A DNA stretch of 64,000 nt from Macrostomum lignano (taxonomy: Eukaryota): assembly GCA_002269645.1 (NCBI GenBank), contig NIVC01002059.1:186001-250000 (forward strand), given 5' to 3'. Of the stretch, positions 1,225 through 49,620 are shown in pieces. The notes beneath the pieces are model-generated. The model was not told the DNA's origin. It did not search any database and worked only from the letters and a program-made list of their open reading frames with translations. Position numbers and translations under genes: made by a program. Within the stretch, counting starts at the first letter, position 1. Each line of letters starts with the position of its first letter.

Positions 1225-1636
1225 TTTTAACCGAGTAACTCTTCAAAAGTAGTTGTATAAATAAGCTTTCTTCCTTACCCGACAGACTTTGAGGGGGGGG
1301 GGGTGTCCGCCTGATAGCGGCGAGACGACTTGGCTTTGGGGATAAGGGGAGAGAATTGAGTAGACTGAGAAGAGCTGTGGGACGAGGGACAATGGAGGAT
1401 CGGGGGGTATGGTTTTGGTTGGCCATACGTATGCCATACGTAGCATACACGTGCTGCGGGATTGACTGTAGGTAGAGAAGTGGAAAGAGAGAGAACTTGC
1501 TATGTAGAAATAAATGCTCGCGGTGAGGAGACGCTTTTGCATAGGAAGAGAGGTTCTCTCTGTATACGGGGCCTGCGTACTCTGAGTTAGTGAGGGCATG
1601 AAGCTTTTGCATGGGGGAAGAGATATTTGCTCTGTA

Positions 1637-1810
1637 CATGTTCGGCGGCGGAACATTTGTTGGGCTGAGGAACAAATGTTCGGCTGAGGAACATTTGTTC
1701 GGCTGAGGAACATTTGTTCGGCGACAGAACATTTGTTCGGCTGAGCAACATTTGTTCGGCTGAGGAACATTTGTTAGGCGACAGAACATTTGTTCGGCTG
1801 AGGAATATTT
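1637..1810. repeat. 19-bp minisatellite (GGCTGAGGAACATTTGTTC), about 8-9 copies
   Basis: Direct tandem repeat visible in the sequence, just upstream of the orphan ORF. Confidence 0.9.
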
Positions 1811-2199
1811 GTAGCTGGCTCTGTAGCTGGTGCCCTAGAGGGTAGTTTTACATTTTCCCTTAGATAAATAGTTGCAAGCGTTGATTTTAGATGTAAGAGC
1901 ATTGTGTATGAATAGATCTTAGTAGACATTAACAAGCCTGGCAGAACTGTTCAGTGTGAGTTCCTATAATAAGAACCTGGAGAGACAACTGGAAACATTT
2001 TTATTGAGAATTTAATTTTTTTCAAAGGGTAAGGACCCTGCGCTGATGATTTAAAGTCTTTGGGATCTGGTTTCACCGCTTTGGATTGAATGTGGGCCCC
2101 ATGGGGAGAAGAATGCAGATTTTTTTCTGATTGTTTCGAAGATGCTATGGGTGGATGTCAGTGGATTATGTCAGTGTCAGCGAGCATAACAGGTGTCCA

Positions 2200-2410
2200 C
2201 TGTCTGATTCTGTCGGGGATAATATGGATGGATTTAATAGGATTATGTTCGAAGTTTTCAGAGCAAGTGCGGCCCCTCCCCTTTTTCATGATTCTGTCAG
2301 GGATAATATGGATGGATTTAATGGGATTATGGAGGACGTTTTGTGAGCGAGTGCGACCCCCCTTTTTTTCTGATTCTGTCAGGGATAATATGGATGGATT
2401 TAGGTGGATT
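2200..2410. repeat. About 84-bp imperfect tandem repeat, about 2.5-3 copies
   Basis: GATTCTGTC(G/A)GGGATAATATGGATGGATTTA recurs at about 2206, 2290 and 2373. Confidence 0.85.
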
Positions 2411-3402
2411 ATGGAGGAGGTGAAAAATTTTGTCCCAGAAGCCCCCTCATGCATTCTACTCGCATGCCAGGCACGCCAATGTATTTATGTATTGTGCATT
2501 ATGCACGCCAAATGCATGCCACTTACCTAATCGCACGCCGGTGCACGCCACTTTTAAAAATGCACGCGGGAAAATTCTCGCGTGCACTACATGATCTACA
2601 CTATGGCTCACCTCTCTCTTCTCTCTCCTCTCCTCTCTCCTCTCCTCTTTCTTCTCTCCTACTCCTCCCTTTCTCTCTGCTCTCTCTAGCAATCTTTCTT
2701 TCTTGTCAGACCTCTTGAGTCTTACCAGTAGTCTCATCCTCCTATTCTCCATTAATATCGATTAATCGATAAATCGATAATCGATTAATATCGATTTATA
2801 GAACTTTTGATATTGTTACTTTTTAGAATAAATTGGTGGACTTGTTGCGGCAGCATGTAGCTGTACAAAGAATAATCTACAGGTTAATTAAGTACACAAG
2901 AAAGGTAGAACGTTACAATAATTTCAACAAGTACAGATAGCTCATGAAATCATTTTCTGGTTTAATGCAGTTGGTAATTGTTAAATCTCTACTGCGGTCT
3001 TACATGAATTCTGCTCCGAGATGCCGGGATTGAGAAGAATTCTTCGGGATCCTGGAATTACAAATACTCGGGATTTAGCGGGATCGATTCCCGGGATTGA
3101 CAAAAGACCGGGATTTTGTAATCCCTAGGTAGGTACTGCTACTGTAAACTAAATAAAATATGAAGGATCAGCTTGATCTAGTTCAGAATGAAAGGCAAAT
3201 ATGGCTTATTTATTTTGAATTGAAATGACATATACATGCTATTGAACTTAGCTGGCATGAAATACTGCGCTTTGGTAGTGCGTGAGACTAAGAGCACGAC
3301 TGTTTTACACAGTTAATACTAATTTGCACATTTAACTGGCCTTCCTTATTGGGTTCGACTGCAGATAACGCAAATATCGGACACATCCAATCCAAAGACA
3401 GC

Positions 3403-3531
3403 ACAGAGGGGGCGGCAGCTACAGAGGGGGGCGGCAGCTGCAGAGGGGGGCGGCAGCTGCAGAGGGGGGCGGCAGCACAGAGAGGGCGACAGCTACAGAG
3501 GGGGCGCCAGCTACAGAGGGGGCGGCAGCTG
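3403..3531. repeat. 18-19-bp GC-rich minisatellite (CAGAGGGGGGCGGCAGCTG), about 7 copies
   Basis: Tandem repeat downstream of the KCNK stop codon. Confidence 0.85.
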
Positions 3532-3742
3532 CTGCTAGAAGCTGGCTGCATCAAGCTGCTTGCCAGCGAAAACACGGCTAAGCTTGCGGACTGCGCTCTT
3601 TTAAAAGATATTCAGGCAGGAAAATCTCCCATTTTCTCTCAAAGCAAAACACACTCCTAATGCGTTGTGAGCAAGCCTGGGGCTTCCGTTCTCGCGACAA
3701 AAATTCCGCAAAGTTCAGTGTGCTCTAGTTTATATTAACAGG

Positions 3743-14317
<10,575 letters not shown>

Positions 14318-14387: not shown

Positions 14388-14812
14388 GTAGGAATACTCA
14401 AGTAGCTAATGTGCTGGGCCTCCTCTCCTACTTATGTAGCTAATGTGCTAGGTGTCCCCTACTCAAGTAGCTAATGTGTTGGGTGTCCCTCCTACTCACG
14501 TAGCTAATGTGTTGGGTGTCCCCTCCTACTCAATTAGCTAATGTGCTGGGTGTCCTCTCCTACTCACGTAGCTAATGTGCTGGGTGTCCCCTCCTATTCA
14601 CGTAGCTAATGTGTTGGGTGTCCCCTCCTATTCAATTAGCTAATGTGCTGGGTGTCCCACCTACTGAAGTAGCTAATGTGCTGGGTGTCCCCTATTACTC
14701 ATGTAGCTAATGTACTGGGTGTCCCCTCCTACTCAATTAGCTAATGTACTGGGTGTCCCCTCCTACTCATGTAGCTAATGTGCTGGGTGTCCCACCTACT
14801 GAAGTAGCTAAT
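14388..14812. repeat. About 34-bp minisatellite upstream of the KCNK start, about 12 copies
   Basis: Unit AGCTAATGTGCTGGGTGTCCCCTCCTACTCACGT. Confidence 0.92.
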
Positions 14813-27266: not shown

Positions 27267-33160
<5,894 letters not shown>

Positions 33161-33473
33161 TGTGGTTGAAGTTTATTATAGAATATCAATACCAATATGT
33201 TAATAAGACTTATCTAGTACTATTTTAAAAAACAAAAAGTTTATGCAGTGTACTACTAGGTCTTCCAAAACTGCAAGCAGCCAAAAGGTGAGCCTAAAGT
33301 CTCTAAAAGGCGTTTACTGTTTTCTAAAATTCTGCCTTAATAAATATTTTTTATCAACTAAGACAGACAGACGAAGACAGTAGAGAACGTACTATAAGTA
33401 AAACTCTGTAGTTAGCAATGTTTTTGAAAGTTTTTATCAGTAGTTCCTAGAAAAAATAAAACAAGACATAATT

Positions 33474-36400
33474 GGGTCGTTCTCAAAGCTAGGTCACAAC
33501 TTTTTGTTATTGCAAAAAAAGTTTATACATCGACCAATAATCGTACAAAAAAAATTCTTTCGACAATTTCTGTAAGAAGCTGCTACTAAAACCACAAGAA
33601 AACTTGAAATTGACAAGAAATCAAGGCTATTTGTTATTCTTTGTTGCGGAAAATAAACGACAAAAATATTAAAGAGAAAATAAAATTTTCTTCTATTTTT
33701 ATTTTAAATATGCAGTTAAATTTCTTTTGCAAAAATAAAAGAACAAGAAATTGACAAAGGAAATGTTTTTGAGCACAGCATTTTGTTACTCTGCTCTAAA
33801 TCCCAGACATTTAAAATTATCGTGTGCGAAAAAGTGCGAAATTATTATAGCATGCACTCGAAAGGACTTCGATCAGTTTAACTAATCACTGAATTAAGAA
33901 GTCTAAATAAGTCTTGAAAGGTTGAATTAAAAATCAAGTTTTCACTATGTATCTTTTCAAAGTTAAGATGATTCGACAAATAAAGAATGTTCATTTTTAT
34001 GGTTAATAGAATTGTTTTCATTTTTACATTAAATATAATAAAATCTAACTAATAATAGAAAAAGTCAGGGAACTATCCTTGAACACCAAAAAGCACATTG
34101 TGGATTTAATATCGACTGCATGTTCCTTAATAAAGGAATTCGGATACTAGTATATATTTGATTATTTGTAGCATAATTTCTGAAAACTATAACTTGCTTG
34201 ATTTTACTTTAAGTACTTATTACATTAATACTTATACCAAAGCTACATGTACTTAAAATAAAAAATTATAGTTACTTATTAGACATTTTACTCCAATTAA
34301 CTTAAAATAATTCAAATTTATTTTAATTAATTCATTTTTTGAAACTTTTTGGAAAATAGACAAAATTGAATTATTTAATTACCAAAAACCTACTAGCTTA
34401 ACTAAAATAGCAATTAGTCTTTAAGAAAAGATTTCACTTGTTAATTGAGAAAAATGAGGATGTGCGAGGTGTAAAAATGCGAAAGAGCATGCAGGAAACA
34501 GAGACAAACAAAAATGTAGGTAAAAGACACTGCACATGCACATAATATGATAACCAGACATAATGCGCACACTGAAACACCAGTAGCAATGACGCCCAAG
34601 CTTTTGATGATCACAAGTGAAAAGGCAAAACCCAGCCATCTAATCAAAGAAGTAGACTATAGCACGCATATTGAGTGCATCACGCATTTTTTGCAGAGAA
34701 GCTCGAAAATTAACATTGTATTCTGTGCACAACCACCAACTGCGACAGGGTCTGCCGGGGGATTTGTGGGCACGCGGTCGCGGATACAAATCGGAGGAGT
34801 CGCTGACCATTCTGAAATTACTAGCTAGCACATGTAATTTTGTGTATTAATATTTTTTAGCCCGCTTTATTTCTATGCTCTCGTCCGCCTCTCGTTAATG
34901 CATCCCCAGACTCATGCAAAAATTAAACTTATGATCGAACTATGCATGGCTTCCGTCCCTCGCTTTGAATCTCTCACCTCCCCATAGTTCCATCAACCTT
35001 ACCGTAGTGGCTTCCTATGCAAAAATCATCCCTCCGCATCTTACACAGGCTACTTCAGGCTGTAGACTGTACTACACTATTAATTAGTTGCGCTAAAGAA
35101 TCTACATGTATTTTGATCGCAGCGCAGCGCGCTGCTCAAAGAAGTTTAGATCTATCTAGATATTCTAGTAATTTCAGGTTTGTCCATAGACTAGAGCTCA
35201 TGAGATGAGAATTCCATTAACTAGTACATTTAATATGAATGAACTGCGTGTGTGTGTGCTGTGCATACATATGTATAATATACGAGTAGTTTATGGGCCA
35301 AATTATTGTGTGGCACAATTCTTGGCATCACTCAGCAGGCACAAGATGCAGTTAAGCAGCGCACGAAAATTCTACAAAAGAAATTGAGCCTGGTTGAGGT
35401 GATGCGAGGAGGCAGATCCACACAATCTCAGTGAATACACCAGACTGCACCAGATACGAGTCCAGTCGAATGTGCGCACTGGTCTAAGCAGCACACGCAT
35501 GTCCTTCTGACAATGACGGCACCTAGCTTCGTCCAAGCCTTTGCCAGCGTCACTGACAGCGTCAATACTACCATGCAGTGCCACCTGCAGCACCGACAAC
35601 GGCAATTCCTCCAGTTAGCCCACAACAGTGGCTAAACTGAGGGACAGGGAACCTACCCACAGAAGACACACACATACACACACAGCACCGGCAGCAGCAC
35701 TCTGACAGCATAACCTAAAGCTCCATGAGCTCAGTTTTCAAGCATTGAAGAAGCAGAAGCAGTCATCTTGGATCCAGGGATCAGGAAGAGTGTTGCATGT
35801 CCGACATGTGCTGTTTCCGTGGCAAAAGGTGATGGAGCAAATTAATCAACACTTACTATCTAGCTCGTATTAAGACTAAAAAACTGAGGCAAGCTGGGAT
35901 TAAACTAAAGAAAATTTTTTACTATACTTTTTTACCATACTTTTACTATACTTCTATAGTATAGTAGAGAGGTACTCTATTTAAATGCAGTAAGAAGTGA
36001 AACAAATTTATATATTTAATTATTAAATTAAATTAATTCAAGGTAAATAACTAATTTAACCAATTTATTAGGAGTATTTATTATTATAATAAAGTGATTT
36101 TTATACCTTACACGAAATAAGCTCTACATTCATTTCTTAGCTTGGGGCCCATCTGTATAAGGTCAGTTTCTTCAAAATGCTGATTAATTAATTAAGGCCT
36201 GTTGTCTTTACTTAAATTTATAAGGGCATCTTAGAAGTTAATATTACTATATAATACAGGTATAATAGTATTACTATATTATAATAATATAGTTGCAATT
36301 TTAATGACTATTGAATAAGTTTAAATGCTTCCCCTATTGACTCTAAATATATGGTATCTTTCCCTTCAGAAAAAATTAGCATAGAATGACTTGATGAAAA

Positions 36401-37274
36401 CAAAAAAAATCATTTCGAGATACACATTTGCTGATCATTCAGGTCAAATTTCAAGGTCCAGTTTTGCACATGTTTCTCTGTAGCTTGGTTACAAGGATTT
36501 TAATAAAAATATAATAAATATGTCCAATGAACTAACTGATACATAGCCAAATTGAAGTATTTTCAAAAACAAAAAAAATCATTTGCTCAGTTTACTTTAC
36601 TGGATATCTGTGTAAAATTTCAGCTCAAAAGGTGCTCCATGGAGAATGCTAGTGTGGTTACAGGATATTTATTTTGTGCTTCAAAGTAGGAGTTAATTGC
36701 GATGCATGGTTGCTTTTAATTATTTTTATCAATAATAGTGCTCTATTTCATAACAATTTTTTACAAAAAGATAATAAGACATGTTTTTCTAATTATCTGC
36801 ATCAAAATGTATCATTTTAAGCGCACATTCTAGACGTCAGCTGAAAAATACATTTTGTGAGACGCAAAGAGGCTATCCCACCGGAAATGCTAGGCGTCCA
36901 GTTAAGCGTCTATAAAATCATTTATAGTGCAGTTTATTGAGCTTTAAAAAATTCTTAAATTAAATTTATATAAGCTTTAATTTTAAATGTAATATAGCAA
37001 GGTTTCAACACAACAACAACTTGTTTTAGCTACAGACATCTTGTAGTATCAAAAATTAACATCGGTGAAATGATTGAATTTGAATTTTTTCATCGCTAAT
37101 TATCGCTTAATACCGCCAGATGATTAAAAACACTTTTGCATGATAAAGTTCAACCCAAAAATTATCTTTATTCACAGATAAAAGTGTCCTATTATTTTGA
37201 ATATGGCAGTAACAATAGTAAATGTTCGGAAAATTGTTAAAATTTTTGCTCCTTCTAGAATTTGCGAACGACCC
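33474..37274. mobile_element. Non-autonomous Sola2-like DNA transposon (3.8 kb)
   Basis: Left end GGGTCGTTCTCAAA (33474); right end TTTGCGAACGACCC (37261-37274, 13/14 match); 4-bp TSD AATT on both sides (33470-73, 37275-78). No long ORF. Confidence 0.8.
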
Positions 37275-38139
37275 AATTATTAATAATGAAAACAACAGTT
37301 AATTTTTTTTTGAAAATAAATATTTAAATTTTAAATTTTAACATTTTTGATAAATAACTTTGTAAAAATTTTGTTTAACTTTAAAAAATTAAAACAAAAG
37401 CTGTTCTTAACAGCTCCTAAATAGATTTGTTTACAAAGTCAACCCTCTTTGCTTTCAAAATATTTTTCAGAACTTTTGAACGGGTCGTTCTCAAAATCAG
37501 GAATTACGCGATAAAACAAGAAAAAAAAATTTTCGACCCTGAACCAGCCTTTCATGCAAAACAAGCAACAGGGTAAACGTAGCTGTTGAAAGAAAAGTAC
37601 TTTATTTATCATTCGAAACAGTGAAATTGGTACGGTTGTCAAAGCAACTGACTACTGAGTCATTTTATCAATTTAATATTTCCATTTCTTCGATGTAACG
37701 CTAAGACGGTGTCATGTTTTGTGAAAAAATTCAATGGGAAAGAAACATCAGAAATAAACTATTTTGCACAGGAAGGAAGAAAAGAACATTAGAATTTGCT
37801 TCTTATTAAAGAATGACTGCTTAGTGATTTGTTCCTTGACTTAAACACAATCTTTCATCACTTAAACGCATCACTGTTCTAGTTACTAGCAGTTGAATTG
37901 TACAAATATATTGCTAGTTTTTTAGGTGAAAGCAATGCATATGGCGTCTTTTGGCGTTTTTTTGTGCCTTATAATGTGATCTTTGTATTTGTGATGTTTT
38001 TATATGGATTAGTGCACCACAGTTGTTGCAATATTTTTTTATACAATTAATTGCTACTAAGACAGGCACAAGCCAATAAACGTTGGGACCACAGTTTTGC
38101 AACACTGGAATAAGATAATGACCAAAAAAAGGAGTAAAG

Positions 38140-38512
38140 TGGAGAACTGGGTGTCTTACAGGAGCATTTTTGTGCTTTTTTAAATACATTGCCTCTGAGC
38201 CCCACAATTAAGCAGAGCATCTGAAAAACATGCACTTTTGCATGTGTCAAAACGTTGGGACTGCCATCATGGGTCACTGAAAGAACTGATTGGGCCGAAT
38301 TTTTTGGAGAGTGTTAGACTAGGTGTCTTATGGGAGCATTTTTTGCATTTTTAAATACATTGCCTCTGAGCCCCACAATTAAGTAAAACATCTGAAAAAA
38401 CATGCACTTTTGCATATGTCAAACCATTGGGACTGCCATCATGGGTCACTGAAAGAACTGATTGGGCTGAATTTTTTGGAGAATGTTTTACTAGGTGTTG
38501 TGTAGGAGCATT
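38140..38512. repeat. 172-bp tandem duplication inside the transposon
   Basis: GGAGCATT anchors at 38161, 38333 and 38505, with high identity between units. Confidence 0.9.
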
Positions 38513-39027
38513 AATTTTTTAAAAGAAAATATTGCATATAAGCCACACAAAATATGTTAACAATTTAGAAACCAGGCAATACATACAAACTGTAATTTAT
38601 GAGTAAGGGATTCAGTAGCATTTTAAACTTGAAATTAAAATTGATGTTTTAAATTAGATATTAGATCTCAATGACTGAAAGAATATGAATCAAGTGGCTT
38701 TATTTGTAGAAATTGGTCCATCAAAAAAAGTTTTGGCCATTTGGAAAATTTTACTTTGAAATGTACAGTTTCTTGCAAAAAATCCTGAATTTTGTGTCCC
38801 AATAAGCAAGTAGCTATTGGCATTATTTAAATGAAAGATACAGTTTAGACTCTATGCAGATTTAGCACAAAATAGACTGCAAAATTTGGATATCATTTTT
38901 GAAGCTTTTCCACTAGGTCCTACTGGCAGTTGAGGCATCTAATAGTGACATTGCTGGGTTTGTTGCCCCTAGTAACATCTAAGTGATTCCCAATCACATG
39001 ATTGTCCAAATTACACTGCAGCTGTAA

Positions 39028-41190
39028 TTGCTTGAAATGACTGCAAAACACAAAAATTCCCACCATCTGTTTCAAGCAATGCCGTTCAAGCCGACTGAAC
39101 GACAAAAGCGGCGTGAAAAGAGGAAAAAATATATTAAAACAAATTTTGGCTCCCACAGTAGCTACCTAGAGCACATGCGGCGGCAACAGCAGAAGTATAG
39201 GGACAAAGGCAATCGCAAGGACAAGGCAGGGTCCAGCACTTCGGCAGAGATCCCCCAGCGATCCTTGGCAAGATCGGCAGCGGCGTTCAAGCGGGAGAAT
39301 GCCAAGCTAAAGGCCAGGGTGCACCTGCTTGAGACTGCTGCCAAGCAGCGCAAGACAAGCAAAACCTGCCTGCGAGTGAAACTTCACCGCGCGAATAAGG
39401 AATTGGCGGCAAAAAGTTGCCGGCTTCAGACTTTCACCAACATAGCTAGCCATGTGAAGAGAGCGCTGCAGTCAGTCAGACGGTTCAATAACACCCGGCG
39501 AGTAATCAAGGCTGCCTGTCTAAACGCCCACGAGGCAGGACGGAAGGCCGTCATGGCCTTCTTTGGCGCCTCCGCGAAGATCTTGAAGCAGCCGAGAGCG
39601 CCGAAGATAAATCTGCTTGTGAGCGTCGTCCAGGAGTACTTTTGCCAGGACGAAAACTCGCGGGCCACCTCCTCCCGGAAGGATTGCATCTCCAAGAGAT
39701 TTGGCGAGGAGAAGGAGACAAAGCAGAAGCGTTATCTCCTGAGCTCAGTCTCCCTGCTCCATGCAAAGTTCCTTTGGGAGTATCCTGGTGTGAAGATCAG
39801 CCGGGCAACATTTAACCGCTGGAAGCCATGGTATGTCAAGAGGGCTCGTCTGTGTGACCGAGACATGTGTATGTGCATAAAGTGCACTAACACGGAGTCC
39901 TTAATCAAAGGCATGCACATTGCTGGACTTCTTCACAGCCACCACATTACTAAAGTGTTGAATGAAATGGTCTGCGACATGGAATACGCTGACTGCCTGC
40001 TGCGCAAATGCGACGAGTGCCGTCGCAAGTCATTTGTAGTCACGGAGACAGCTGAGGCTGAGCCACAGGTTGTGTACCGCGTTTGGAAGCCTCGGACAGA
40101 TGGACGCAGCGGCTTGGATGTGGTCAAAGAGACGGCATCATGCAAGACGGCTATCAGCATGCTGATGGTGCAACTAGTCGACTTTGCGGGCCACTTTATG
40201 CGGATGCGGAACCAGTATCGTGCAATCCGCCAGGTTAAGGATACTCTGCAGCCGGGACAGCTCCTGTTGCACATAGACTTATCCGAAAACTATACGGCGA
40301 AGTACCACAAAGAGGTACAGGCGGCGCACTTTGGCGACAAGGATCAGGTGGTGCTTCATCAAGGCGTGGCCTACATGGCTGGACATCAACCTTGCTCATT
40401 CGCAACGGTATCAGGAGAGAGGAGTAAGACGGCGGAGGCCATCGCCGCTCATCTACAACCAGTCCTTCGCCACTTTAAGGAGAAGCACGATGTCGATAAG
40501 GACGCCTTTAGCCAACTGGACCAGATCGTCATCGTCTCTGATTCGCCATCCAGCCAGTATAGAAATCGCAAGATGGTTTTCTTATTCGACCGCCTGATGA
40601 AGATCATGAGGGTGTCAAGCTGGCGTTGGATCTACACAGAGGCCGGACACGGCAAGGGTGCTGCGGATGGAGTTGGAGCGGCTATCAAACGCCGCTGCGA
40701 TGAAGTCGTGGCTAGCCGGCAGGACGTTGTAACACCTCAGGATGTTATGGAAGCCGTCAGATCGGGTAGCCCTCTGCACATACTCACATGGTTGGTTCAG
40801 CCAGAGGACATGAACTATTTCACAAGCATCATCACCTTCGTAGGTGAGGACCTCTGCGGCATGCCAGGCTCGAAGTCGATGCACGACGTCTCAAGGACTG
40901 ATGGTGGGCCGATCACTTACCGTCAGCTGTCCTGCATGTGCCCTGGTACAGCAGTAGCCTGCCCATGCCACGAGATGAAAGTGTGGGCGCCGCTGATGCT
41001 GCCGGAGGCGCCAGCTCCTGATACTGCAACGAGTGGACTCGGATGTGGGCGTGGAGGTGGACGTGGACGCCGAGGTGGACGAGGACGCGGAGGTGGACGC
41101 CGAGGTGGACGAGGACGCGGAGGTGGACGTGGACGTGCAAGTGGTGATGAAAAGGCGCTGCTCCCTTATGACTTTTACAACGAACCTTAG
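39028..41190 (+). CDS. DDD/E transposase, Sola2-like (about 703 aa from ATG 39079), with a C-terminal RGG tract
   Basis: Motifs RWKPWYV, CxCxxC, HIDLSENY, QVVLH, IVSDSPSSQYRN and EAGHGKGAADGVGAAIKR; no stops; lies within TIRs and TSD. The transposase call is solid; the subfamily is less certain. Confidence 0.85.
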   Translation: MLEMTAKHKNSHHLFQAMPFKPTERQKRREKRKKYIKTNFGSHSSYLEHMRRQQQKYRDKGNRKDKAGSSTSAEIPQRSLARSAAAFKRENAKLKARVHLLETAAKQRKTSKTCLRVKLHRANKELAAKSCRLQTFTNIASHVKRALQSVRRFNNTRRVIKAACLNAHEAGRKAVMAFFGASAKILKQPRAPKINLLVSVVQEYFCQDENSRATSSRKDCISKRFGEEKETKQKRYLLSSVSLLHAKFLWEYPGVKISRATFNRWKPWYVKRARLCDRDMCMCIKCTNTESLIKGMHIAGLLHSHHITKVLNEMVCDMEYADCLLRKCDECRRKSFVVTETAEAEPQVVYRVWKPRTDGRSGLDVVKETASCKTAISMLMVQLVDFAGHFMRMRNQYRAIRQVKDTLQPGQLLLHIDLSENYTAKYHKEVQAAHFGDKDQVVLHQGVAYMAGHQPCSFATVSGERSKTAEAIAAHLQPVLRHFKEKHDVDKDAFSQLDQIVIVSDSPSSQYRNRKMVFLFDRLMKIMRVSSWRWIYTEAGHGKGAADGVGAAIKRRCDEVVASRQDVVTPQDVMEAVRSGSPLHILTWLVQPEDMNYFTSIITFVGEDLCGMPGSKSMHDVSRTDGGPITYRQLSCMCPGTAVACPCHEMKVWAPLMLPEAPAPDTATSGLGCGRGGGRGRRGGRGRGGGRRGGRGRGGGRGRASGDEKALLPYDFYNEP

Positions 41191-41307
41191 GTAGCTCATC
41201 TCAGCTCTCTAACTATCCTAGGCTATATATCCTATATACTAAAAATGAAATCCTATCCTAATTGTACGTGCTATATACCATTAAAGTAGGGGTTGATTTG
41301 CTCACAT

Positions 41308-41838
41308 TTATATATTAAATAAAGTTAGGCGCAAGTAGTACAAGTAAGGTGAACCATTCGTATTTAAATCCGAATGCGGAACGAGGCCTCCATCGGCTGC
41401 GGCAGAGACAAGGGAGTATGGCCTCCTTGGAGTCGGCATCTCCAGCGGCGTTGAGGTGGGCGGTGCAGCAGGCTCCGCTGTTGCAGCAGGATGGACTGCG
41501 GCAGCGAGCTGTTGTATTAGCTGTTGGTTCTGCTGCATCTTCGCGGTCATCAATGCGTTGACATCGATGCCAGGAGTTGTCGGGGTGAGGGTGGCAGCAG
41601 TGACCGGCGCAGTAGGAGTAGCAGCCAGTTGTTGTGGGCCCCGGTCGGTCCCGGCGAGGTCGTAGCGGTCGTTAAAGTTGGGTGTCAAAGAGGCATCAGG
41701 ACCAGTGGGGGCTCCAGAACTAGTGCCAGCGGTGGCAGCAACAGCGGTCGGAGTGGGCGGCATGGTATGCGCCAGAGCAGTAGTGGTTGCAGAAGTGGAG
41801 GTGGTGTCGCCGGCATCCATCGAACGCATAATAACCAT
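41308..41838 (-). CDS. Convergent orphan ORF inside the transposon (176 aa, Ala/Thr/Pro-rich)
   Basis: ATG-to-stop ORF with GC-rich, coding-like composition, ending 117 bp from the transposase stop. No recognised domain. Confidence 0.45.
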   Translation of the reverse strand: MVIMRSMDAGDTTSTSATTTALAHTMPPTPTAVAATAGTSSGAPTGPDASLTPNFNDRYDLAGTDRGPQQLAATPTAPVTAATLTPTTPGIDVNALMTAKMQQNQQLIQQLAAAVHPAATAEPAAPPTSTPLEMPTPRRPYSLVSAAADGGLVPHSDLNTNGSPYLYYLRLTLFNI

Positions 41839-43908
41839 GAATTATTTGAAGAGTTGTGAACGCTCTGCTACCAAATTTGTCGCTTGGACAACAAACTAAT
41901 GAGCAGTTAGTAGATGGAGTGTATTTCGTGGCAGTGGAAGCAAAAGGTAAAGCAGAAAGAAAGGAACATGGACGCGCCTGAGGGGAGCAAAGCTAAGAGA
42001 AACCTATAACGGAGAGGAGGTCTTGTACATAGATATAAAAGTGGTAAACGCAAAGGATGAGCTAGGTCACTATTGCTGGAATTGCTTGGCTAAACGGTAG
42101 GGATGAGGTCATAGACAATAAATAAGGTTAGCTGCAACTAAGTAATATGTTAAAGGGACTAAAAGTACATGAAAACGTAAGTCGAAGGTGAAGGCCCAAA
42201 AGAGGCGAAGTATTGGAGGATTATAATCCGACACCCATGATGTCAAAACTCGGTCCATCACATCCTGTTACATTTCTTTAAACTAGTGTTAAATGCACAC
42301 TATGTTTAAAATACTATCATTCTTCATGCACTATTTTTATTGATTCAGGGGCAGTCAAGTCCAAGCATGACTGTTTCGATAGCTTCATTATATAGTTCCT
42401 TCATGCCTACATATACAGATAAATGTTTTTTAATCTACCCATTTCATCAAATTGTTTTCAGTTGTTTTTGTCCTGCAGTAACGTTTGTAAATCCTTTTGG
42501 ATTGTAATACTTTAGCATAAACCAGTCAGTATACATGTACTTTTTAAATTTCTTCTTGTTTAATAATATTGTATCCATTCATAGCAGACTAGAGTATATA
42601 GCTGTTTGCAAGACTACATTTCTTGCAAGAATAAAAAATATAAGACAAGAAAATGTCTTATTTATAATAAATAATTACATTTAGAGTCAAACATAGATAA
42701 TTCTACAGAATATCAGGCTGCATTCATATGTACCATATATTAAGATGTCCAAACTCCAATATTCCATGCATATTTACAATGCAACAAAGCTTTTTGCAAT
42801 CATATTTCATTTCTGTGCTTGATTTGTTTTGTCTCTTCTTTCCAGTTTTTGCATCTTCTTGAACTTTTTGAGACTATACACAATGCACACGAATTTTCTC
42901 AGCTCTTTATATGCCATGTGTGCTATATTTAAACTGCCTTTGTAATTTCATACTTACTATAAAGCTTCTCTATTATACACTCATGCTTTAATTTTTGCTG
43001 TAGATGTATAAATATATTCTTTTTCCGTCTGAAGCAGACTTCTGAGTTAAAATATGAGTACATATAGATCTTCCTATGGATGTTTGAATCATCCAAAAGG
43101 ATTATGTGATACATAAACTTTGCAATCATTCTTGTAACCACAGATATGAATTAGCGCCTAGCGGGATACTAAATTTCGCGCATAAATGCACATATCAGTC
43201 GTTCACGCTAAGAAATGTAGCTAACAATTTTCAGATAATGTTTTGAATTACTATATTTGCGTTATCCAACGCAATGCGCATTGTAATTAATTTGTAAATA
43301 GCTAGAAAATGTCACGAACAAAGCAATGTAATACTTGAGATAGTACCCTCAGGTTGCGCGACGCACAAATTGTTCAAAGTTAAACGAATGCGTATCATAG
43401 GTATACAGTCATATTATAACAAAATATGTTTATTTAAGGGTTCGGCGCTCCGTAAACAGAAAACTAATTAAATGAAATTATTATCTATTTTAAAAGAATA
43501 AATTACTCTATAGAATTTGACGATGATATGCTGGTGTATTTCTAGTTTTCGTGCAATAAAATAATTCCGATAATAATATTTAAACAAAGCGGCATTCCAT
43601 GCTGTCCTGACATTTTGTTGTGGTTTACGACACAAAATACGTTTGTTGCATCTATAATTCGTTCTTAGGTAAAGATTGAGTCACGAATTTTTAAAGAAAA
43701 AAAACGGAAGCATAAGCAGTGCCTGATTTTGAGAACGACCCGAACAATTAAAATATTTCAGTTACTTTTTTACTGCTAGTCTTATAAACATTTTAAATTA
43801 CATTGTGCTTTTGTCTCGCGCGATCTTTTTTACCATTATCGTATTATTGCATTTTCAATCAGCAATACATTTACTTTCGAATCTTTGTCAACGATCGGAA
43901 ATAAAGCA

Positions 43909-46900
43909 ATGGCAGAGCACATGCAATACAAGGGCCAGCTCATTGGTCACAATGGCTGGGTAACCCAGATCGCTACTAATCCACAATTTCCAAATATGAT
44001 TCTTTCTGCCAGTCGGGGTAAGGATTTTTTCTTTTTGTATAAGTGGATTCTTAGTCAATGGTTTGACTTTAAGATTAACTTTTAATCAGTGATCTTGCCT
44101 ATATTATTACCTGTCAAATTACTAGTATAAAGACATGTTTACCTTTTGACTAATTTATAGAACTTTTTATCAAAAGAACAAAAGTTTAGGATCCAGGACA
44201 ATTTGTTTGCTGGACTATTTAAATGACTAGGCTTAGTGGCAGTGGAATATTTATCTGCTGGTGCTAAATAATGAATAATAATTTATAAATAAAAAATGTC
44301 ATTGTAATGATTAAGTCTTAAGTCTTAATTATTAGGGATTGACCAACTGTGATTTTTGTATGCATGATTGGAACTAGACCATAGTGTTGAACACTGTTAA
44401 TGAAAATATTAACTTCCATTAATGGCAAAAGTGTTGGCATTAAAACAAAAAATCTTAATTTAGTAACTCTTAATTTTGTTAAGTTAAATAAAGGTTAACT
44501 AATAATTGGTTAATAAGCATTAATCTATTAAAGACTTTAAAGTTAACTTGATTTAAAGATCTAAAGAATCTAAAGATTTCTTGCACTTTTTTTCAAAACA
44601 GACTTTCTAATGCACTGTCTGCTTTTCCACCTTTTTAGTGAAACACTGAGGTCATCTAAAAGATTTATAAGCTAAAAAAGGTGTCCTAATAAATAATAAT
44701 TTTAAAAACTTTATGTATAAATACTTTTATAAAAAATATATAATTTATTAATTTAAGTAAGTAAATGGTAAAAGAAGTAACTCTTATTTAATTCTTATTA
44801 AGTAACTTTATAGTAATGATACGAAATGTGACTTGTGGATAGATAAACAGGTGTATTTTGTGTATGAATCACCTTGTCTTGTGTGTCTGTGGTCAGCAAA
44901 AGTTGGGACTTTGCAACCCAAATGTGGCGCCAAAAAATGCATCAAGCATGCTCTAGTCTAGGGGGGGCATTAGCTACATAGAATATATGTGGCTCATTGA
45001 TGTGCCGCTATAGAAATGAAAACTTCTCCCACAAAAAATCTGCATAGAGAAATTTGAAATACAGTTACATGTATACTACAGGAGCAATTTGATTGGCCAA
45101 ATATTTTTATTAAAAATGACATTACTTAGCATTGGGTGTTGACAAAATGCAATGCAGGCAAATCTGTTGCAACTCACAAGGCTACATGTACGAGTAAATG
45201 CAGCACTAAAGGAAAAAGCATTGCAGAAATCTCCACGGGCAAATTGCACTGCGGGAAAATCTCGGCAGGAAAAGCTCAGCGGGCAAATCTGCGCAGGCAA
45301 ATCTGTGGGCAAATCTCGGTGGGCAATTTGTCTGCGGGCATTTCTCATGGACCCAGCTCGGCACCCTGTGTTGCTCTATGTACTCTGGCTATTGGGAGTT
45401 AGAAGAAATTTTATTGGCATTTTCAAAAGTTTAGTAGTATTGTACTATTGGGAATATTAAAAAATAATGAAATATGCCTAGACCAAATACCAACCTACCT
45501 TTCCAAGTTTATGGAAATCATGCCCCTATCAACCTATGCTCCATTAACTCAATTCTCAATGCTCCACTTCTCTCAAAGCCTCAAATCTAAGCAAAATGTG
45601 TTTGCAACTTCTTAAGCACCCTTAAAATATGCTATATGTCCTTTATTTAATTCGTTTCATTCCTTTTTGAGTCAAGCCCATAACCCCTAATATTCTTAAC
45701 TTTTCAAACTCAAACTTCTCATTCCTCCATTCCTTTTAAAGCCTTTTCATAACTTAAGAGCATAATTATCCTTAATTCCTTCTTTCATTTATTTGCCATA
45801 CTGCTTATACCAAAACCCAACTCTTGACTTAGTGATTGGCATATGTATGCTTGAATTTTCAAGCATAAAGGCCACATGCTAGACAATGGAAGTAAATACC
45901 CTAGAAATTTTTTGTCTATATATATTGTATATTGCAACTATCTATTTGGTCAACAGTCTATTTTGGTAAAAAAATTGTTAGTCATTATAGCAACCACAAC
46001 CAACCATTATAGCAACCAAAACTGACATGAAGTTCCATTTTTAAAATGTTAATTTCTTTGTATATTTTGTTGACAAGTAAAAAAAATAATAGGAAAATTT
46101 CTAATGTCTAAGCAATGACATTGGCAAGAAGTTCCTTTTCAAATTAATTACATTGATCTTTCTCTGTGTATTGTTGAAAGTATAGTCCCTGATTACATAA
46201 TAGAATATTTTTTATTCAATTTCTCCATTTTATTTTTTCTATAGTAAAATGGTTCTATCTAACAATTTGTTACTATGGCAGTACATGGTACGCGCCTTAA
46301 CTTTGTATGCAGCATGCTATTTGCATACACGTGCAGTCTCTTAAATTACATCAAAATAAGAGCAAAGTAAGAAATCTTATTGGGGATTCTAATTAACCAT
46401 GCGATCTGGTTGACAATTTTAGACAAAAGTCTCATCATGTGGGAGCTGAACCGCGGCGAGAACTACGGCGTGCCTAAGCGCGCTTTACGCGGCCACAATC
46501 ACTTCGTGTCGGATGTCGTGATGTCATCTGATGGCCAGTTTGCCCTGTCCGGCTCCTGGGACAGCACCCTGCGTCTGTGGGATCTCACAACCGGCCTCAC
46601 AACTCGTCGATTCACTGGCCACACTAAGGACGTCCTGTCCGTGGCGTTTAGCGCCGATAATCGCCAGATCGTGTCCGGCTCGCGCGATCGCACTATCAAA
46701 CTGTGGAATACGCTGGGAGTGTGCAAGTACACCATCACCGAGGACAATCACTCTGACTGGGTTAGCTGTGTGAGGTTCTCGCCGAACACGGCCAATCCAA
46801 TTATTGTCAGCGCCGGTGTTGACCGTCTAGTTAAGGTGTGGAACCTGACCAACTGCAAGTTGCGCACCAATCACATTGGGCACAGCGGCTACCTCAACAC

Positions 46901-47276
46901 TGTTGCTGTCAGCCCCGACGGCAGCCTGTGCGCCTCCGGTGGCAAGGACGGCAAAGCCATGCTATGGGACCTGAACGAGGGCAAGCATCTGTACACCCTG
47001 GACGGTGGCGAGAGCATCAACACGCTGACCTTCTCGCCTAATCGCTACTGGTTGTGCGCGGCTACCGGTCCTCTAATTAAGATCTGGGATCTGGAGAACA
47101 AAGTGGTTGTTGACGATCTGCGCACCGAGGTTGTGGCCACTAGCACTAATCTGAAGCGCAAACCAGCTAGTCCAGAGTGCCTGTCGCTTGCCTGGAGTGC
47201 CGACGGTCAGACCCTTTTCGCTGGCTACTCGGACAATGTAATCCGCGTCTACGGTGTCACCGTGTCTGCCCAGTAG
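43909..47276 (+). CDS. RACK1: Receptor for activated C kinase 1 (WD40 ribosomal protein), 320 aa
   Basis: Exon 1 43909-44017 ([36 protein letters not shown]), phase-1 intron, exon 2 46423-47276 (DKSLIMW...[14 protein letters not shown]...); total 963 nt; WD40 repeats. Confidence 0.98.
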
Positions 47277-47329
47277 CTTAGGCCTATTGATATTTCACCG
47301 ATTCCCGACCAGAACCCGCGAGCTCCTTT

Positions 47330-47335
47330 AATAAA
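47330..47335 (+). promoter_or_regulatory. Polyadenylation signal of RACK1
   Basis: AATAAA 54 nt after the stop codon, followed by a T/GT-rich stretch. Confidence 0.7.
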
Positions 47336-47711
47336 AAGTTGTGTTTTTTGCTTCTCTGTCTCTCTTTTCATCTAGTGCGCGATCGATTGTAAGCTGATCT
47401 TCTACTAGTTAGTAGTGTAGTCAGGCAATAAAACAGAGATCGGTTCGAGATTAAACAAATACCAGCTGTGAAAACTAGCAGAAGCGAAATGTGTTCCGGC
47501 GTGACTTCAGCGCGTATGGAGGATTGTTATAAAAAAGTAAAATCCAACTTGGTTTGAAATTTTCTCGCGATGGCTAAGCCGAGTCTCTGGACTGTTTGTG
47601 ACAGTTCTTGAATTTGCATTGGATATGAAAAATGCGTTCTTTTATCTGGTTTTTATCCGTCTTATTTATTTTTCCGATATCAGGCATCTAGCTCTTCAGT
47701 CTTTGCCACTC

Positions 47712-49620
47712 TCCGATTTACTCAAAACCCCTCGGATCCAGCCTCCCAGACTCAACAGATCCAGCCTCTCTGACTCAACAGATCCAGCCTCCCAGACTCA
47801 ACAGATCCAGCCTCCCAGAATCAACAGATCCAGCCTCTCTGACTCAACAGATCCAGCCTCCCAGACTCAACAGATCCAGCCTCCCAGAATCAACAGATCC
47901 AGCCTCTCAGAATCAACAGATCCAGCCTCCCAGACTCAACAGATCCAGCCTCCCAGACTCAACAGATTCAGCCTCCCAGACTCAACAGATCCAGCCTCCC
48001 AGAATCAACAGATCCAGCCTCCCAGACTCAACAGATCCAGCCTCCCAGAATCAACAGATTCAGCCTCCCAGACTCAACAGATCCAGCCTCTCTGACTCAA
48101 CAGATCCAGCCTCCCAGACTCAACAGATCCAGCCTCCCAGACTCAACAGATCCAGCCTCTCAGACTCAACAGATCCAGCCTCCCAGACTCAACAGATCCA
48201 GCCTCCCAGAATCAACAGATCCAGCCTCTCAGAATCAACAGATCCAGCCTCTCAGAATCAACAGATCCAGCCTCCCAGACTCAACAGATCCAGCCTCCCA
48301 GAATCAACAGATTCAGCCTCCCAGACTCAACAGATCCAGCCTCTCTGACTCAACAGATCCAGCCTCCCAGAATCAACAGATCCAGCCTCTCAGACTCAAC
48401 AGATCCAGCCTCCCAGAATCAACAGATCCAGCCTCCCAGACTCAACAGATCCAGCCTCCCAGACTCAACAGATCCAGCCTCCCAGACTCAACAGATCCAG
48501 CCTCTCTGACTCAACAGATCCAGCCTCCCAGACTCAACAGATCCAGCCTCTCTGACTCAACAGATCCAGCCTCCCAGACTCAACAGATCCAGCCTCCCAG
48601 ACTCAACAGATCCAGCCTCCCAGACTCAACAGATCCAGCCTCCCAGACTCAACAGATCCAGCCTCCCAGAATCAACAGATCCAGCCTCTCTGACTCAACA
48701 GATCCAGCCTCTCAGAATCAACAGATCCAGCCTCCCAGACTCAACAGATCCAGCCTCCCAGAATCAACAGATTCAGCCTCCCAGACTCAACAGATCCAGC
48801 CTCTCTGACTCAACAGATCCAGCCTCCCAGAATCAACAGATCCAGCCTCTCAGACTCAACAGATCCAGCCTCCCAGACTCAACAGATCCAGCCTCCCAGA
48901 CTCAACAGATCCAGCCTCTCAGACTCAACAGATCCAGCCTCCCAGACTCAACAGATCCAGCCTCCCAGACTCAACAGATCCAGCCTCTCAGAATCAACAG
49001 ATCCAGCCTCTCAGAATCAACAGATCCAGCCTCCCAGACTCAACAGATCCAGCCTCCCAGAATCAACAGATTCAGCCTCCCAGACTCAACAGATCCAGCC
49101 TCTCTGACTCAACAGATCCAGCCTCCCAGAATCAACAGATCCAGCCTCTCAGACTCAACAGATCCAGCCTCCCAGACTCAACAGATCCAGCCTCCCAGAC
49201 TCAACAGATCCAGCCTCCCAGACTCAACAGATCCAGCCTCCCAGACTCAACAGATCCAGCCTCCCAGAATCAACAGATCCAGCCTCTCTGACTCAACAGA
49301 TCCAGCCTCCCAGACTCAACAGATCCAGCCTCCCAGACTCAACAGATCCAGCCTCCCAGAATCAACAGATCCAGCCTCTCTGACTCAACAGATCCAGCCT
49401 CCCAGACTCAACAGATCCAGCCTCTCTGACTCAACAGATCCAGCCTCCCAGACTCAACAGATCCAGCCTCCCAGACTCAACAGATCCAGCCTCCCAGACT
49501 CAACAGATCCAGCCTCCCAGACTCAACAGATCCAGCATCTCAGACTCAACAGATCCAGCCTCCCAGACTCAACAGATCCAGCATCTCAGACTCAACAGAT
49601 CCAGCCTCACAGACTCAACA
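47712..49620. repeat. 23-bp minisatellite (GATCCAGCCTCCCAGACTCAACA), about 80 copies
   Basis: Long homogeneous array between the 3' ends of RACK1 and the neurotactin-like gene. Confidence 0.97.

Follow-up and report, generated by a model that had tools for sequence, protein, structure and literature searches.

The window analysed here comprises 64 kb of the Macrostomum lignano contig NIVC01002059.1 (assembly GCA_002269645.1), in which the DNA between two divergently oriented genes, encoding the catalytic subunit of protein phosphatase 2A (PP2Ac) and RACK1, contains two DNA transposons, referred to below as element 1 and element 2. Exon 1 of PP2Ac was located on the minus strand at 33050-33160 by tblastn with human PPP2CA, with the start codon at 33160, and spliced reconstruction places further exons at 29734-29261, 28656-28376 and 27339 to approximately 27267. 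The PP2Ac coding sequence is intact, yielding a spliced product of 312 aa that ends ...TPDYFL. RACK1 lies on the plus strand, with exon 1 at 43909-44017 (ATG at 43909) and exon 2 at 46423-47276; its coding sequence is likewise intact, and the spliced 320-aa product is identical to the M. lignano RACK1 entry UniRef A0A1I8HXC9 (P0274). The two start codons are 10.7 kb apart, the two elements having stretched this distance from 679 bp. Element 1 occupies 33474-37274 (3801 bp) and element 2 occupies 37482-43741 (6260 bp, plus strand). The original intergenic DNA survives as three remnants: a PP2Ac-proximal segment of 313 bp (33161-33473, including the left AATT at 33470-33473), a central segment of 207 bp that separates the two elements (37275-37481), and a RACK1-proximal segment of 167 bp (43742-43908).

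Both elements are delimited by the same short terminal motif. The pattern GGGTCGTTCKCAAA, i.e. GGGTCGTTC(T/G)CAAA, has exactly four exact matches in the 64-kb window, at 33474 (+), 37261-37274 (-), 37482 (+) and 43728-43741 (-); a shuffle control in which two mismatches were allowed gave a mean of 0.68 matches, the four real ones being exact. The terminal inverted repeats (TIRs) of element 1 are GGGTCGTTCTCAAA (33474-33487) and GGGTCGTTCGCAAA (37261-37274, minus strand), matching at 13 of 14 positions, and are bordered by a target-site duplication (TSD) AATT at 33470-33473 and 37275-37278. The left junction thus reads AATT followed by GGGTCGTTCTCAAA, and the right junction TTTGCGAACGACCC followed by AATT. 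Element 2 has perfect 20-bp TIRs, GGGTCGTTCTCAAAATCAGG, at 37482-37501 and 43722-43741, with the TSD GAAC at 37478-37481 and 43742-43745; here GAAC is followed by GGGTCGTTCTCAAA on the left, and TTTGAGAACGACCC by GAAC on the right. An earlier note, made from the letters of the window, had proposed two elements with these termini, AATT and GAAC as their TSDs and a 207-bp gap between them, and all of its coordinates were verified in the window.

Further PP2Ac/RACK1 loci were found by looking up M. lignano RACK1 proteins and then their contigs, which yielded three loci; the window's own locus on NIVC01002059.1 (L003) was identical across the 11.3 kb compared. In the locus on NIVC01003296.1 (L004) both elements are absent and the empty sites are precise, with one AATT and one GAAC. 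At the site of element 1, GACATAATT runs directly into ATTAATAATG, and at the site of element 2, CTTTTGAAC runs directly into AATTAAAA. Identity between L004 and the window is 100 % over 32677-33473 and 37275-37481, and 99.75 % over 43742-47700. The PP2Ac-proximal remnant corresponds to L004 6808-7120 and the central remnant to L004 7117-7323, each with 100 % identity, while the RACK1-proximal remnant is conserved in L004 as well as in the locus on NIVC01001111.1 (L005), and partly in the paralogous locus on NIVC01003274.1 (L002). The distance between start codons in L004 is 679 bp, equal to that of the window minus both elements and minus one copy of each TSD. This is also the length predicted in the earlier note by deleting both elements in silico (313+203+163). 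Within this 679-bp region the two insertion sites lie 203 bp apart.

The L005 locus is approximately 95-97 % identical to that of the window, and both of its sites are empty, with approximately 674 bp between the start codons. L002 represents an old paralogous head-to-head pair, with exons at 80-87 % DNA identity and a start codon spacing of 641 bp. In all three loci the ATG-ATG distance is below 1 kb, the limit on the spacing of divergent 5' ends that is used to recognise a bidirectional promoter pair. Because L004, L005 and L002 all keep this short spacing, the comparison supports a compact head-to-head arrangement as the ancestral state of the PP2Ac/RACK1 pair, as had been suggested from the window itself. 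Both element 1 and element 2 are precisely missing from L004 and L005, so that empty-site copies, which the earlier note had suggested looking for as alleles or haplotypes, are present in the same assembly. These empty sites show that each element was inserted separately, precisely and very recently into a single copy of the locus. The proposal that they arose independently thus holds, both from their separate TSDs and from their separate precise empty sites.

The perfect complementarity of the outer termini (33474 and 43741), and the repeat-rich nature of M. lignano assemblies, would fit one composite element bounded by these two positions, or an artefact of assembly. However, the outer flanks of such a composite, AATT and GAAC, make no TSD, in contrast to the inner pairings, and the spacer of 207 bp belongs to the intergenic DNA that preceded the insertions, being present between the empty sites in L004. 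A composite element is excluded by the non-matching flanks and the original-DNA spacer. Every junction is, furthermore, exact to the base, and the empty sites in L004 and L005 effectively refute either version of this explanation, which we regard as extremely improbable.

The larger of the two insertions, element 2, has a single large open reading frame (ORF) on the plus strand at 39037-41190, encoding a transposase of 717 aa plus stop (720 aa in a TTG-started version, 39028-41190). The 5' non-coding part contains a tandem repeat of approximately 172 bp (38146-38512; about 2.1 copies, about 90 % identity). A low-complexity ORF of 176 aa is present on the minus strand at 41308-41838, in the GC-rich 3' part of the element, and has no Pfam match. 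The segment 41200-42000, 3' of the transposase stop, is GC-rich (0.52-0.55) and strongly GC-skewed, and WormBase and UniRef gene models splice variously across it.

A second copy of element 2 was found at an unrelated locus on NIVC01000504.1 (L001). It is 99.8 % identical over the full 6.26 kb, with 5 substitutions in the interior and three small indels between the two copies, and beyond the termini the two loci are no longer similar. The 172-bp tandem repeat is also visible as off-diagonal matches against this copy. The ends of the L001 copy (8398-8400 and 14653-14660) are flanked by ...TTGCA and AGGA..., with no matching 4-bp duplication. No disruption of the 717-aa ORF is seen in either copy. 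Compared with L001, the window transposase carries the changes F415L (codon 415, 40279-40281), beside the first catalytic aspartate, and C714Y (41176-41178). The element thus shows the hallmarks of recent activity, with intact ORF and TIRs, near-identical copies and insertion polymorphism, and is probably a young and still mobile autonomous transposon, as judged from these sequence features.

The 720-aa ORF matches a M. lignano hypothetical protein at approximately 100 %. Two M. lignano copies of the transposase (P0278 and P0279; UniRef A0A1I8J4H8 and A0A1I8GA31) bear the name 'ATP-dependent DNA helicase'; the name is probably an auto-annotation artefact, the sequences being the same transposase with different predicted splicing. 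No relevant match to the ORF was detected in Pfam or among PDB sequences, and a family profile run against PDB also gave none. The family itself is very large: when 1.84 billion cluster representatives were searched with HMMER, 7694 scored at E<=1e-3, and 997 of them reached E<=1e-30. Alignment of 35 diverse members shows invariant aspartates at three positions, D417, D505 and D547 in the numbering of the TTG-started ORF, together with several invariant cysteines. These correspond to the catalytic triad D414/D502/D544 when numbered from the ATG. Cys-rich regions are located on both sides of the core, and the C-terminal tail (41035-41154) is RG-rich. An AlphaFold2 model of the transposase (mean pLDDT, the predicted local distance difference test score, of 76, with the core >90) has the order b1-b2-b3-a1-b4-a2-b5-a3 at residues 411-562, and the core is thus predicted to adopt an RNase H-like fold. 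Foldseek comparison of this model with solved structures gave only weak matches, one of them at E<=0.001, with RNase H-like nucleases as the best; no transposase was present among these matches.

The Sola superfamily was reportedly described by Bao et al. in 2009. We compared the 35-sequence family profile with two Sola2 transposases, Sola2_DFa-2 and Sola2_PPa-1, both taken from supplement 3 of PMC3627910. Using hhalign, Sola2_DFa-2 was matched with Prob 95.6 % (E 1.1e-8) and Sola2_PPa-1 with Prob 85.9 % (E 5e-6). The three aspartates are in register with both references, aligning D(F/L)SENY with DFKEN, SDSP with SDG/CDN, and GHGKGAADG with HGKSxxD. The likeness to Sola2 transposons is hence one of profile-level core homology with three aspartates in register (SDSPSSQYRN with SDG; HGKxxxD), and it extends to a 4-bp TSD, short TIRs, a single large transposase ORF and the lack of a Pfam model. 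A 4-bp TSD is a stated feature of Sola2 (PMC3627910), and Sola has no Pfam model (PMC5751038), in agreement with the lack of a Pfam match here. The comparison supports assignment of element 2 to the Sola2 type. The 'Sola2-like' label given in the earlier note therefore stands, by virtue of the profile match to two published transposases, the DDD triad and the 4-bp TSD.

Several properties nevertheless distinguish element 2 from these references. Identity of its transposase to the amoebozoan Sola2 proteins of Dictyostelium fasciculatum (DFa-2) and Polysphondylium pallidum (PPa-1) is only about 15-18 %. The termini of the window elements begin GGGTCGTTC..., in contrast to the AT-rich, unrelated ends of the dictyostelid DFa and PPa transposons. 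Of the two TSDs, that of element 2, GAAC, is not an AT-rich AWWT sequence, and no Fanzor/TnpB passenger gene is present in the element.

Closer relatives share the terminal motif. On a JGI contig (L008) we identified a complete 5.2-kb relative with a transposase 37 % identical to that of element 2 and the termini GGGTCGTTCGCAAATCTTGGG at both ends, the same as GGGTCGTTCGCAAA; its TSDs are TACA/TGCA. Relatives at approximately 30 % identity, located on JGI contigs by a protein-guided scan, end in GGGTGATTCTACAGG, GAGACATTCTCC, GAGTCATTCTCTG or GAGTCATTTTCTC. As L008 and these more distant relatives end alike, the lineage has a common terminal motif of approximately GRGWCRTTCTC. The TSDs of the metagenome-derived relatives are unreliable, with flanks that seem chimeric between copies. 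Many subterminal GTCCACTCCGTTAC-like 14-mers, in both orientations, were observed in JGI relatives including L010, L014, L015, L038, L044 and L069. These 14-mers of the ~30 % relatives may be putative transposase-binding sites, and no equivalent was noticed in element 2.

Element 1 encodes nothing recognisable. It contains no ORF above 93 aa, and a search of the six-frame translation of the window with a hidden Markov model revealed no transposase remnant in element 1, nor a second remnant anywhere in the window. Comparison with element 2 by blastn and tblastx matched the termini only. The earlier description of the two elements as related is consequently correct for the common 14-bp termini and does not extend to their interiors, where neither method detected similarity. 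Element 1 is best read as a non-autonomous element that would depend on a transposase recognising the same ends. Like the non-autonomous members of Ac/Ds-like or MITE-like pairs (MITE, miniature inverted-repeat transposable element), it has retained 14 bp at its termini and the 4-bp TSD of the autonomous family; unlike such derivatives, it is large (3.8 kb). Given the lack of any detectable relation between its interior and that of element 2, element 1 is not a simple internal-deletion derivative of element 2.

Together, these observations make it very probable that one copy of the PP2Ac/RACK1 locus received, in independent and very recent events, two cut-and-paste elements sharing the same termini, and that element 2 is an autonomous Sola2 transposon. 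A number of points weigh against this. No second copy of element 1 was found in the genome data reached locus by locus, and for that reason its mobility is read from TIR, TSD and empty site only. Pairwise BLASTP of the transposase to Sola2_DFa-2 was not significant, which leaves the profile comparison as the link to Sola2; the comparison was, moreover, made with Sola2 references only, and a closer kinship with Sola1 or Sola3 is possible. At the 5' tip of the L001 copy of element 2, GG is replaced by CA, and no TSD can be recognised around this copy; damage to the end, aberrant insertion or rearrangement of the flank are possible causes. Finally, the residue at the D-F-S-E-N position is Phe in L001, in other M. 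lignano copies and in >90 % of the family, in contrast to Leu in the window copy. As F415L affects a nearly invariant position, the window transposase may be impaired, and the window copy of element 2 may represent a weakened version of the master element.

For the independent insertion of two such elements, the following history can be proposed. The copy of the head-to-head PP2Ac/RACK1 locus that bears the insertions would be either an allele or a very recent duplicate, and both elements landed in the 679 bp between its two genes, a 5' intergenic region common to both, at sites separated by 203 bp. The analogy of other DDE/DDD transposases suggests that the 717-aa DDD transposase would bind the GGGTCGTTCTCAAA... 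inverted repeats and excise the element, with integration by 4-bp staggered cuts giving rise to the 4-bp TSDs. Element 1 would be mobilised in trans by a transposase of the kind encoded by element 2. PP2Ac and RACK1 would each run on the proximal promoter segment they have retained, of 313 bp and 167 bp respectively.

Further insertions are present at the copies of this locus. A 629-bp MITE-like element with long TIRs (GGCAGTGCTTATTTAGCCGGCACCGGTC...) and internal subrepeats is located in PP2Ac intron 1 (32039-32667). Its 9-bp TSD, ACCATAGAA, is found at 32030-32038 and 32668-32676, and the element is precisely absent from L004. The 9-bp TSD suggests a Mutator-like origin. L004 in turn contains a palindromic MITE of approximately 165 bp (at about 5443-5607, corresponding to about 31328 in the window), with duplicated (T)ACATATT flanks, that is absent from the window, and both haplotypes thus carry private transposable element insertions near the PP2Ac 5' end. 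Tandem arrays with a period of approximately 47 bp in a PP2Ac intron (27359-28262) and approximately 23 bp downstream of RACK1 (47735-49000+) differ in length between the window and L004. RACK1 intron 1 of L005 (approximately 1326-9582) is about 7 kb longer than that of the window, and is filled largely by a 21-bp satellite (approximately 5660-7000) and purine-rich low-complexity repeats, with no recognisable transposable element.

The question arises as to why two insertions should be found in one short promoter. A causal clustering, in line with the promoter or open-chromatin targeting suggested in the earlier note, whereby the Sola2 family, in common with DNA transposons generally, prefers nucleosome-depleted DNA at active 5' ends and a strongly expressed bidirectional housekeeping promoter acts as a hotspot, is one tentative answer, to which we attach somewhat less than even weight. 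It would account for the presence, within a promoter of 679 bp, of two distinct elements that share their termini and are separated by 203 bp; besides their four termini there are no others in the 64 kb. Furthermore, all four insertion polymorphisms between the window and L004, namely the two Sola2-type elements, the 629-bp MITE with its 9-bp TSD and the ~165-bp MITE of L004, fall within approximately 2.35 kb around the PP2Ac 5' end and the intergenic region, out of approximately 11 kb aligned. Some cut-and-paste transposons, namely the Drosophila P element, piggyBac, maize Mutator and rice mPing, have an established preference for promoters or 5' ends. As in those systems, the insertions described here lie within a few hundred bp upstream of the start codons of highly expressed genes, and the 5' end of the locus holds a cluster of several DNA transposon polymorphisms; the preference of those systems was shown genome-wide, in contrast to the single locus and one non-promoter copy available here. 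Only three insertion sites of the element family were accessible, two in the PP2Ac/RACK1 promoter and one at L001; the neighbours of the L001 copy are an ankyrin ORF, a retroelement fragment and further ORFs that are unannotated, with no evident promoter. The case was also chosen post hoc, by a reader seeking oddities. The more specific proposal of an active M. lignano Sola2 family, consisting of a 6.26-kb master and non-autonomous partners, that prefers open and highly expressed promoters, appears rather unlikely on present evidence.

A preference of this kind is not required if insertions land widely and persist here, where selection on a redundant copy of the locus is relaxed, an explanation that we hold just as provisionally as a hotspot. 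Besides the paralogous L002, the assembly contains at least two more PP2Ac/RACK1 loci, L004 and L005, that are near-identical and have undisturbed promoters; given these intact copies and the paralogous pair, selection against the insertions was probably weak. Private transposable element insertions on both haplotypes point in the same direction. The insertions are also young, with flanks that are 100 % identical and element copies that differ by 0.08 %, leaving little time for purifying selection to act. With intact copies of the locus present, relaxed selection is an equally good explanation for the persistence of the insertions. However, it leaves unexplained the occurrence of two elements of the same family 203 bp apart; we estimate that fewer than approximately 0.3 such close pairs are expected by chance if the family has fewer than approximately 1000 copies in the ~760-Mb assembly. 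Both coding sequences on the insertion haplotype are, in addition, intact. The close spacing could be explained by coupling, if transposase bound to the ends of the first resident element, or made in cis from element 2, recruited the transpososome of the second element nearby. With identical 14-bp termini, the same transposase should bind both elements, and the pair consists of one autonomous and one non-autonomous element only 207 bp apart. Against this, L004 and L005 lack both elements and no haplotype with a single insertion was found, and we judge coupling to be improbable.

The earlier note had further raised the possibility that element ends contribute promoter activity. The distance to the nearest element end is 313 bp for the PP2Ac start codon and 167 bp for that of RACK1, so a contribution of promoter or enhancer activity to PP2Ac and/or RACK1 on the window haplotype is conceivable, and because the transposase gene is co-oriented with RACK1, read-through into the latter is possible. 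However, both genes keep their original proximal segments unchanged. In the case of RACK1 this segment includes TCTCGCGCGATCTTTTTT at 43814-43831, approximately 84 nt upstream of the ATG, a candidate TCT/TOP (terminal oligopyrimidine)-type initiator of the kind typical of translation-machinery genes. This motif is conserved in the empty copies L004 and L005; the intergenic region of the paralog L002 is too diverged for informative footprinting, apart from a CG-rich motif near RACK1. Dependence of two essential genes on the element ends is further undercut by the existence of undisturbed copies of the locus and of the paralogous pair. An exact-protein look-up in public transcript contigs recovered no contig encoding the exact window RACK1 protein, and the nearest Logan transcript (L006), whose 5' untranslated region is unrelated, probably derives from another species or a paralog. 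On balance, donation of promoter activity by the elements seems very doubtful.

In most respects the locus is an ordinary case of transposon insertion polymorphism in a transposon-rich genome with duplicated loci, and does not depart from known transposon biology. What is newly documented is that M. lignano harbours a Sola2 family which, as far as its sequences reveal, is young and probably active, together with a filled-site/empty-site pair. The same PP2Ac/RACK1 promoter is present both intact (679 bp) and split by 10 kb of transposon DNA, offering a comparison within one genome in which allele-specific expression could reveal what portion of a compact housekeeping promoter is required, and whether any of its elements serve both genes. 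We know of no Sola-superfamily element that has been shown to transpose experimentally. As the host is a flatworm in which transgenesis works, element 2 is a candidate genetic tool. If the family does prove to be active and to prefer promoters, the locus would constitute a natural experiment in which a bidirectional housekeeping promoter can be compared with and without insertions, and element 2 would be the first of the Sola superfamily that could serve a transgenic flatworm model as a vector for insertion or enhancer trapping.

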